DNA of 64,000 bases from assembly GCA_025786725.1 (NCBI GenBank), contig JAHLTZ010000005.1, positions 682,001 to 746,000 on the forward strand, written 5' to 3'. The DNA is from Syncephalis fuscata S228 (Eukaryota; Fungi; Zoopagomycota). Under the pieces are notes generated by a model that was not told where the DNA came from, searched no databases, and saw only the letters and a list, made by a program, of their open reading frames with translations. Shown here piece after piece: positions 51,318 to 53,834 of this stretch. Every line of letters starts with the position of its first letter. Position 1 is the stretch's first letter. The position numbers and the translations under genes are program-made.

Positions 51318-53834
51318 CTTATCTGAAAGAAAGATATTCATCAATTTTAATGGCAACAAGATTTCCACGACGCTTTCGTCGTTTCAACATTTGCCAGCAC
51401 TTGTTGACAACAGCAAATCGATAGCCCTTGTATACATTGTTTTGCTTGCCAAACATTGCATCGCCGAATACAACAAGTGGCATTTTGCTAGTTGTTTGTA
51501 ACCTTGCTGGGCGCCATCCTTCTTTCACTCTTGGTGGCTCACTATTTAATTATATATAAATCATATATTAGTATACACATTAATAAGATATTAATAATAA
51601 CTTACCTTTCAGCCACTTTAGTAATTGTTACTATTGGCGGATCATCTTTCTTCTTCTTTCCGTGTCTCTTTCTGTGATTCTTTCCTGTCCTTCCTCTCTT
51701 CTGTCTCTTCTTTCTTGCTTCCTTTCTTTTCTTCCTGCTGTACTTTTTTCCACCGTTGGTCAGTATGTTGCCATTTCTTCGGCTGCTCGCTGCACTCCTT
51801 GATAGCCATGAAAACGTGGTTTGGTGTGCTGGAATTGTAAAAGTTAAACAGTTTGGCCATGTACTGAAAGACATAGGAAATATGTTGTCTGTATTGTAGT
51901 ACACTTTGTGTTTTACCCGTTGGTAACTCAGTTTCAGCTTTTTTAATTTCTTCCAGGTCTTTTTGTCCATTTTGTTTTCGTAGACGGCGGATAGAGCCGG
52001 TATAGTTGTAATATTCTTTTGTTGAACATCGTCGGATTTATGGAATTCATTTCCATGTCCATATGCAGCAGTAAAGACTTGGCTAATGCCAGGATCTACT
52101 GCACATGGACGGAAATACTGGGCAATATCTTCACTCCTGAAATCAGCAACTGAAAGTTCAACATTATTGCAATTTGACTTTCTACTTTCCCGGTAAAAGT
52201 GAAAGTCAACAGAGTAGCCATCCGTTGTAATTGAATTCATAAATTTAATTCTTCTTTGTTCGCTACTATTTAATAATTCTTCTTCACTACAAATACATAG
52301 TTGTTTTAATTATTATAATTTCATTTTATATATTAAATACCTTTTGTAGCCCAGTTTTCAAAATTAAAAACATCATAAAAATTACGTGTATTATTTTCAT
52401 AATAATTCTCATTATGTGCTGGATATAAATAAATTATTTCAGACAAAGCCAATGCGCTCACGTGTATAAAGCACCACTTGAAAGAAACATTAGGAACGAG
52501 TGCGAAGAGACGTGGTAAGTGTATTGGTGGTGGAGGTGTATGTGCTGCTTGTAAGTGTATTTTCTATATTCACTGAGTATATACCGTAAGCAGGCACAAA
52601 ATCACCTGGCGATGCAGAAAGCTTTGTTAAAGTGGCACGTTCTGTTATCACTTTTTCAAGTTCCACGCACACACGTCCAACGGCAGCAGCAAATTCTTTG
52701 TTGTTTTTGTAAATATCACTTTCAAGCGGTTTTGGCTTTCCGCCTGCCACACGCTCATAAATGTATTCACTTGCAATACATTTAATATAATGAAGAGGAA
52801 TTGCCTATTTGATGTAAATAAATAAAGTCGAGATTAAATATATAAGCTATTTATTATCTACTTACCCTGGAGACATAGTCACGAAGTCGAAAGACTGCAA
52901 ATTGTGTTACATGACTTTCAAATTGCTCAACAATAATGTTTTGGTATACTGTTGCTAGTGTTGTACATGCTGATAATAAACATTGCTGTAGCATTGGATA
53001 CCGTCTAATTCATAGACAGCTGCAGGATAATTGCCTCAATGCATTCCAATTTTTAATGATATCTTGAAAAGTTCATCGTTTTTGTTTTTAATTTTCCTGT
53101 CTTCTTCAATTTCCTTGCCCATAGCCAATCGGCAGACTAAATAAAAATAGTCTTTGTGTACAGATAACTTGGTATTGCTTCATTTTTTGAAATAATATAT
53201 AGATTGGTAAATAGTTGGACACGGATTATAACCTCTCGAACAAATTTACATACTTCATTAACTTTGCTTTTTAGCTGGCGCTCATGCTTTGGCCACACAC
53301 ATGAACTCCATGGCAATTTGCGCGTAAATACTTCAACGCCAAATCCGAGTTCAGCCACTGCCTTCTTCTTCATTGTATTTGAAGGGCGTTTGTGTGCCAA
53401 AGCTCAGCTGACTTATGGCCTTCTTCATCACCAGATAGACATTCTTCATTAGAAATGCTTCATTTGGCATAGGACGCCCTCTTTGCCAACGTCCTTTCTG
53501 TTTAGCCTGCTTATTAGCAGACTTTTCCTCACTGGTCAATTTTCTTTTTTGACCAACTATATAAAATGCTATTAATAAAAGTATACAGAATAAACAAAAT
53601 ATAGATACTAATCTGAATATCACTTGCAGACTTTGCTGTGTCTTCGCAGCTTGCATGTCCATGTTTTTTACAATTAACGCAAACTACTACAATAGATATT
53701 AACCATATAAATAAATTTAAATCATAAATAATAAATATTATCATTACCTTCTTTTGTTTCTTATATTTCAACTCATTTTCTTCCTTCTTTTTCTGCTTAA
53801 TAGCAGCAATAAATTCATGAACGAATAGTGGCAT
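51318..53834 (-). mobile_element. Intron-containing Fanzor1-like (eukaryotic TnpB-derived) nuclease gene, decayed and 3'-truncated
   Basis: In order: zinc knuckle CVNCKKHGH, FTRK..VREVIIRVQLFTN, CLLSACTTLATVYQNIIVEQFE, PRLFALVPN..W.FI, ITTDGYSV, RuvC-I RPCAVDPGISQVFTAAYG, RRCSTKEYY, NILTNGGKKY, PLVVFGDAMFG, RuvC-II IDEYLS. Frameshifts and stops throughout. Confidence 0.85.

Follow-up and report, generated by a model that had tools for sequence, protein, structure and literature searches.

Decayed remnant of a probable Fanzor1 element in the genome of the mycoparasite Syncephalis fuscata

The minus strand of a 64,000-nucleotide stretch of DNA from Syncephalis fuscata (the window, positions 682001-746000 of its contig in a 29.4-Mb assembly) very probably carries the decayed remnant of a Fanzor1 element of about 3.7 kb, extending from approximately 54547 to 50877. 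Fanzors are eukaryotic proteins, carried by transposons and related to TnpB and Cas12, both of which are RNA-guided nucleases. The locus is a pseudogene, a broken Fanzor1 copy and not a working nuclease. It documents Fanzor1 in a mycoparasite of the Zoopagomycota, a group for which our literature search found no paper on a Fanzor. The finding concerns a known family of transposon genes, heavily decayed, in a new host phylum, and it brings neither a new mechanism nor a usable nuclease.

By homology, the ancestral gene would have encoded a TnpB-type, single-RuvC, omega-RNA-guided DNA endonuclease. Its protein would have comprised an N-terminal REC/WED region, the RuvC-I Asp, a rearranged RuvC-II Glu, a Zn-ribbon (TNB) and the RuvC-III Asp, and its coding sequence would have been interrupted by spliceosomal introns.

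Homologues and family assignment

Two minus-strand ORFs contain the motifs by which the locus can be recognized. An ORF of 212 aa (51602-52240) includes TDGYSV and AVDPG, and one of 69 aa (51319-51528) includes FGDAMFG and IDEY. With further minus-strand ORFs upstream (53137-53400 and 52490-52750), the pieces between about 53400 and 51325 occupy three frames and are ordered as in the Fanzor1 proteins of Mucorales. A HMMER search with the 212-aa ORF returned 116 proteins at E < 1e-3, including the 390-aa model of the locus itself (P0001). The named relatives (Apophysomyces, Rhizomucor, Mycotypha, Mucor and Phycomyces) are all Mucorales, and the family is thus not lineage-specific as had been supposed. 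Two of the homologues, P0008 (521 aa) and P0005 (352 aa), align colinearly with positions 53400 to 51328 in tblastn, and the order of the ORF pieces is therefore not due to chance. A profile of seven homologues, from which the locus's own gene model was left out, also matches the window in four pieces: 52282-51653 (E 7e-34), 52037-51657 (E 2e-20), 51834-51769 (E 4e-4) and 51528-51331 (E 2e-18). The order of motifs given in the original prediction is upheld by both results.

Three of the homologues (P0005, P0025 and P0051) combine the TDG... strand, a DPG motif, a helical linker, RuvC-II and W.RD in single chains. Their linker ends with NGGKKY and a Lys/Arg-rich run, followed by VVFGDGM...IDEY.TS.C..C. 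The Cas12f1-like TNB domain (PF07282) scores above the Pfam cut-off in P0005 and P0025. When the homologue profile was compared with solved structures, the best match was the Spizellomyces Fanzor1 SpuFz1 (8gkh, E 1.1e-12), in two stretches that cover both RuvC halves, whereas TranC, TnpB and Cas12m matched much more weakly (E 1e-3 or worse). By its best solved match in this profile comparison, the locus is closer to characterized Fanzor1 than to Fanzor2 or bacterial TnpB. The profile region of the segment at 52040-52281 aligns with the TDG.../IDPN region of SpuFz1; here the invariant DP of the profile and the IDPN of SpuFz1 are the counterparts of AVDPG, whose RuvC-I Asp has its codon at 52096-52094.

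In the published RuvC-II signature of Fanzors, Gly or Pro replaces the canonical Glu, and an alternative Glu follows about 45 residues later (PMC10530073). This rearrangement is present at the locus, with Gly in VVFGD and Glu in IDEY 42 residues on. Because PF07282 is found in the homologues, the profile matches 8gkh, and RuvC-II has the rearranged Gly/Glu arrangement, we assign the family to Fanzor1; judged by its sequence, the gene at the locus is an intron-containing member of this TnpB-related family, as had been proposed. Profile searches of the AVDPG and IDEY regions matched the Fanzor1 family and not an unrelated one. Searches were run exon by exon or with public homologues. Pfam gave no match with the ORF pieces of the window, because these are too short or broken, and phmmer of the 212-aa and 69-aa ORFs against PDB sequences yielded chance matches only, so that the family profile is needed.

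Gene structure, lesions and the lost last exon

The recognizable segments, introns and flanking regions of the element are collected in Table 1. GT-AG introns, which the original prediction had placed between the pieces, account for only three of the breaks (52864-52805, 52340-52282 and 51605-51542), and most of the others are frameshifts. There are at least six of these (near 53150, near 52983, at 52560-52530, near 52040, at 51822 and at 51769), of which five look like 1-nt deletions, together with one in-frame stop (TGA at 53038-53036). The true frame of the linker changes at the last three sites. No significant coding homology was found above 53400 by tblastn with every homologue at least 380 aa long, and the proposed reach of the gene to 53834 is not sustained; an N-terminal coding extension at 53400-53834 was rejected as unsupported by homologues.

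Table 1. Features of the Fanzor1 remnant, listed from 5′ to 3′ on the minus strand (positions in the window)
Feature	Position	Strand	Basis and remarks
Element 5′ non-coding region	54078-54547	-	blastn: abuts window 51313-51569 in L024, L025, L027 and L028
Upstream stretch including proposed start 53834	53433-54077	-	Own-genome DNA search: three other loci carry it at about 84% identity
First recognizable coding segment, N-terminal helical region	53149-53400	-	P0008 residues 4-92, 38% identity; ended by frameshift near 53150
Second N-terminal segment	52865-53155	-	P0008 91-205 in two frames; TGA 53038-53036, frameshift near 52983
Predicted 60-nt GT..AG intron	52805-52864	-	GTAAGT...AAATAG; in-phase junction of the two homologous frames
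Middle coding segment (EYIYERV ... FKW ... FENWATK)	52341-52804	-	P0008 184-336 in two frames; frameshift about 52560-52530
Predicted 59-nt GT..AG intron	52282-52340	-	Same intron used in public model P0001
WED-like strand (TDGYSVDF) and RuvC-I AVDPG	52040-52281	-	P0005, 52% identity; profile 5-85
RuvC-I to RuvC-II linker, helical, Lys/Arg-rich at end	51606-52039	-	Frames matching profile 86-153, 154-175 and 176-212
64-nt GT..AG intron	51542-51605	-	Spliced out in run X1 contig joining 51541 to 51606 (CT..AC on + strand)
RuvC-II exon	51325-51541	-	Gly in VVFGD; alternative Glu of IDEY at codon 51339-51337; at least 22 places in genome
Damaged exon end and splice donor	51313-51324	-	1-nt deletion; family CAG/GTAAGT is CAGATAAGT here (alignment with 7 family copies)
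SINE-like retroposon, about 297 bp, GC-rich, in place of last intron and Zn-ribbon/RuvC-III exon	51021-51317	+	Dispersed repeat
Element 3′-terminal non-coding region	50877-51020	-	Common to family; copy also precedes 5′ end of short derivatives

The 212-aa ORF follows the true frame only in its first 68 or so and its last 55 or so codons, and is a false ORF because the homologous frame shifts within it. The GenBank model for the locus is KAI9598146.1, a 390-aa hypothetical protein of S. fuscata that matches the locus exactly. This model begins at an internal Met and treats conserved coding sequence as an intron. About 100 of its codons are in a frame common to no homologue, and its middle aligns with none. 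The present analysis corrects this public model, which is read through the shifted frames.

The locus might still yield a truncated protein that is dead as a nuclease, like the 390-aa GenBank model, and that has been co-opted, for example for RNA or DNA binding. A near-identical sequence is indeed transcribed at a low level and spliced, and a 235-codon frame remains open despite the shifts; however, about half of that frame does not coincide with the frame of any homologue, the homologues support no start codon, and the family gives no sign of purifying selection. We consider such a co-opted product highly improbable and regard the locus as a pseudogene.

At the last splice donor, GT has changed to AT. 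In an alignment with family copies, homology breaks at 51313 and is picked up again at 51020; in the sister copies, the counterpart of this interval consists of an intron of about 75 nt and an exon, ICHVC...LVCQNCQVVWNRDVMASKNI, that encodes the Zn-ribbon and RuvC-III. These copies keep both the CxxC...CxxC of the Zn-ribbon and the WNRDVMASKNI of RuvC-III. The Zn-ribbon (TNB, PF07282) that should follow RuvC-II is missing at the locus and present in sister copies and homologues, and the locus is therefore a relic of a Fanzor1 member rather than an intact one. The RuvC-III Asp (W.RD motif) is likewise missing, its exon site being occupied by the SINE-like element. Thus, the original prediction was right that the copy is inactive, with the TGA, the frameshifts and the loss of exon homology after 51313 all in evidence, and that the RuvC-III exon is absent, but this exon is not merely absent, since a retroposon lies in its place. 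The exon was lost through insertion of the SINE-like element coupled to a deletion. With at least six frameshifts, one stop, a spoiled donor and a lost last exon, an active nuclease cannot come from this copy.

The retroposon has at least 68 candidate copies in the genome (40 scored), most of them at 93-96% identity, and other copies show target-site duplications of 13-17 bp. It has an AAATCC-type tail and a B-box-like GGTTCGAATC near its 5′ end; ARAGORN detected no tRNA in it and Rfam holds no family for it. In the RNA contigs of a public run, X1, its summed contig depth is about 270,000, compared with 3-5 for the flanking exons. The GC-rich island was also considered as an omega RNA, a candidate that was rejected because the island is a high-copy dispersed retroposon in the other orientation, whose copies at other loci have target-site duplications. 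In one X1 contig (depth 247), 51317, in the SINE tail, is joined to opposite-strand position 54679. In that organism, a different SINE copy probably lies beside a further copy of the 54.7-kb repeat.

The X1 contigs that correspond to the locus are 96-99% identical to it, at low depth (3-5). Two of the frameshift sites are affected: the spliced contig, about 98% identical to the locus, has one extra G behind 51822 and a second behind 51769, both in short G runs. Because of these extra Gs, the two lesions are either absent in another strain or copy, or are assembly errors. The gene could be intact and active in the organism, with its frameshifts being errors of the assembly, a reading with which the spliced contig and the resemblance of five of the six frameshifts to 1-nt deletions also agree. 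However, the extra Gs have no bearing on the remaining lesions or on the missing last exon: that exon is physically replaced by a retroposon, the donor is mutated, and the TGA at 53038-53036 is a substitution. Moreover, host ORFs in the same window are open and long (725, 510 and 470 aa), which makes a general indel error in the assembly unlikely, and the 1-4% substitutions indicate that the X1 contigs do not come from the same DNA as the window. An intact gene is accordingly very unlikely, and a genuine decayed copy is the reading that we retain.

A more speculative scenario is that the family was acquired horizontally from Mucorales hosts and that a related Syncephalis isolate, the source of X1, has a less decayed copy that is transcribed and spliced. 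At 52% identity to Apophysomyces, the conserved pieces of the window are no more remote from it than the Mucorales families are from one another (33-43%). We consider this combination doubtful; if true, a functional nuclease could persist in the lineage.

Other copies, element ends and surroundings

The family profile matches 79 places in the genome, and its positions 4-216, which take in RuvC-I and the N-terminal half, are covered only at the present locus. The RuvC-II exon is found at no fewer than 22 places and PF07282 matches at least 71. Other N-terminal copies were sought by a first-look filter of the whole genome and in fetched loci totalling 263 kb. When the 74 fetched loci were all searched without a filter, the N-terminal half was again found only here, and tblastn of seven long homologues against 64 other loci (the 263 kb) recovered only the last 130 or so residues of the homologues. 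Searched against the genome, the 212-aa ORF and two pieces of it hit the locus itself only. In the filtered genome and the fetched loci, no intact copy of the kind that a genome search had been expected to seek was found: none of the roughly 79 matches besides the locus has the N-terminal half, and about 78 other loci, including a family of at least 20 copies, retain C-terminal exons only.

Besides these 3′ exons, such copies keep only the element's 3′ end, some of them as internal-deletion derivatives of an element like the one described here. At four loci (L024, L025, L027 and L028), the 5′ 470 bp (54547-54078) are joined to the intron that precedes the RuvC-II exon, which identifies at least four members of the family of at least 20 copies as derivatives of this kind; in some other copies, the DNA upstream of the retained part is unrelated. 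Among copies, the RuvC-II exon has a dN/dS of 0.67-1.0 and the glutamate has been lost in some. The short copies evolve almost neutrally. The family appears to be extinct in this genome, with one gutted full-length copy and about 78 C-terminal relics.

The same junction could be read in the opposite direction, as that of a chimera in which an unrelated single-copy segment of 2.5 kb (51570-54077) was inserted into a short FGDAMFG/IDEY repeat, so that the parts never formed one gene. As this would require, at least 22 copies exist of the 69-aa exon but only one of the 212-aa ORF, and 51569 abuts 54078 in other copies. Against it, both parts occur in the same order in single proteins of other fungi (P0005, P0025 and P0051), the intron seen to be spliced joins them in frame, and the break in the short copies falls inside that intron, as a deletion predicts. 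There is very little chance that the locus is a chimera, and internal deletion from a once continuous Fanzor1 gene is the explanation that we prefer.

In the short derivatives of L022-L028, the last 40-170 bp of the element (ending ...GATTTGCTGCCCTGGGG) are also found directly before its 5′ end, for example at L024:4303-4470 and 5520-5688. This arrangement could reflect terminal direct repeats, head-to-tail insertion, or insertion beside an older 3′ end.

A second Fanzor subfamily is represented by two loci, L029 (G000:C24:427816-437815) and L030 (G000:C339:382255-392254), on the minus strand near 4780-5210. Its members are about 40% identical to the exon in the window and consist of open C-terminal fragments of 131-140 aa with IDEYNTSK, CxxC and RDVNASRNM; no N-terminal half lies upstream of these fragments. 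At L029, an ArfGAP-like host gene ends about 800 bp upstream of the Fanzor fragment.

No transposase domain was found when ORFs of at least 110 aa from 43000 to 57000 of the window, within about 7 kb, were examined, in agreement with the earlier statement that none is adjacent. A search for inverted repeats of at least 40 nt around the element also found none, and neither Helitron ends nor target-site duplications were established for it. The marks of an autonomous DNA transposon carrying Fanzor were therefore not seen here. The 3′ end of the element is conserved among copies. RNAalifold gave -16 kcal/mol over 283 columns with a covariation term of +0.25, a result that does not support a structured omega RNA in this region, and the Rfam search of the region gave no match.

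A dispersed repeat of about 500 bp has two direct copies in the window (44336-44831 and 54665-55152, 91-97% identical) and also occurs beside several Fanzor relics elsewhere. Each copy contains, on its minus strand, a non-significant Zn-ribbon-like remnant (around 54868-54903 and 44525-44608, E about 0.9). The two direct repeats were rejected as boundaries of the element, since they are copies of a dispersed repeat.

Comparison with known systems

The structurally characterized SpuFz1 (PDB 8gkh; Saito et al. 2023, PMC10432273) resembles the family in that its TDG... strand, the DP of RuvC-I, DEYKTS...C..C and the W.RD of RuvC-III align with the family profile, and in that both occur at multiple loci, many of which have partial copies or copies that lack an ORF. 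The relationship is distant, however, and is seen by profile only. SpuFz1 is a single intronless ORF with 30-nt inverted repeats (PMC10432273), whereas the S. fuscata locus has introns, showed no inverted repeats of 40 nt or more and is dead.

The Fanzor1 families of Mucorales are colinear with the locus, at 33-52% identity over the conserved pieces. They include proteins of Apophysomyces ossiformis (KAF7721224.1 and KAF7721558.1), Rhizomucor, Mycotypha, Mucor and Phycomyces as well as the MCi, ROr and PBl elements of Bao and Jurka 2013 (PMC3627910). The Lys/Arg-rich linker and the Gly/Glu arrangement of RuvC-II are common to these proteins and the locus. Unlike them, the locus lacks the Zn-ribbon and RuvC-III, and its host belongs to the Zoopagomycota and is itself a mycoparasite of Mucorales.

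Fanzor1 elements that are 3′-biased and 5′-truncated or internally deleted are known, such as CRe-1,2,3 and MCi-2 (PMC3627910), and ORF-less 'ghost' or partial Spu-1 loci have been described (PMC10432273). The relics in S. fuscata are similar in that 3′ ends are in excess and copies share the 3′ part, with a 5′ part that varies or is deleted. They differ in that the S. fuscata assembly holds no intact source copy.

More distantly, bacterial TnpB (IS200/IS605 and IS607) and Cas12f/Cas12m have in common with the homologues a core of RuvC and Zn-ribbon (PF07282), and the profile matches TnpB, TranC and Cas12m weakly. The gene at the locus is distinguished from them by being eukaryotic, by its introns and long N-terminal extension, and by the rearranged RuvC-II glutamate. 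Introns, together with NLS-like stretches, are known features of Fanzors (PMC10530073).
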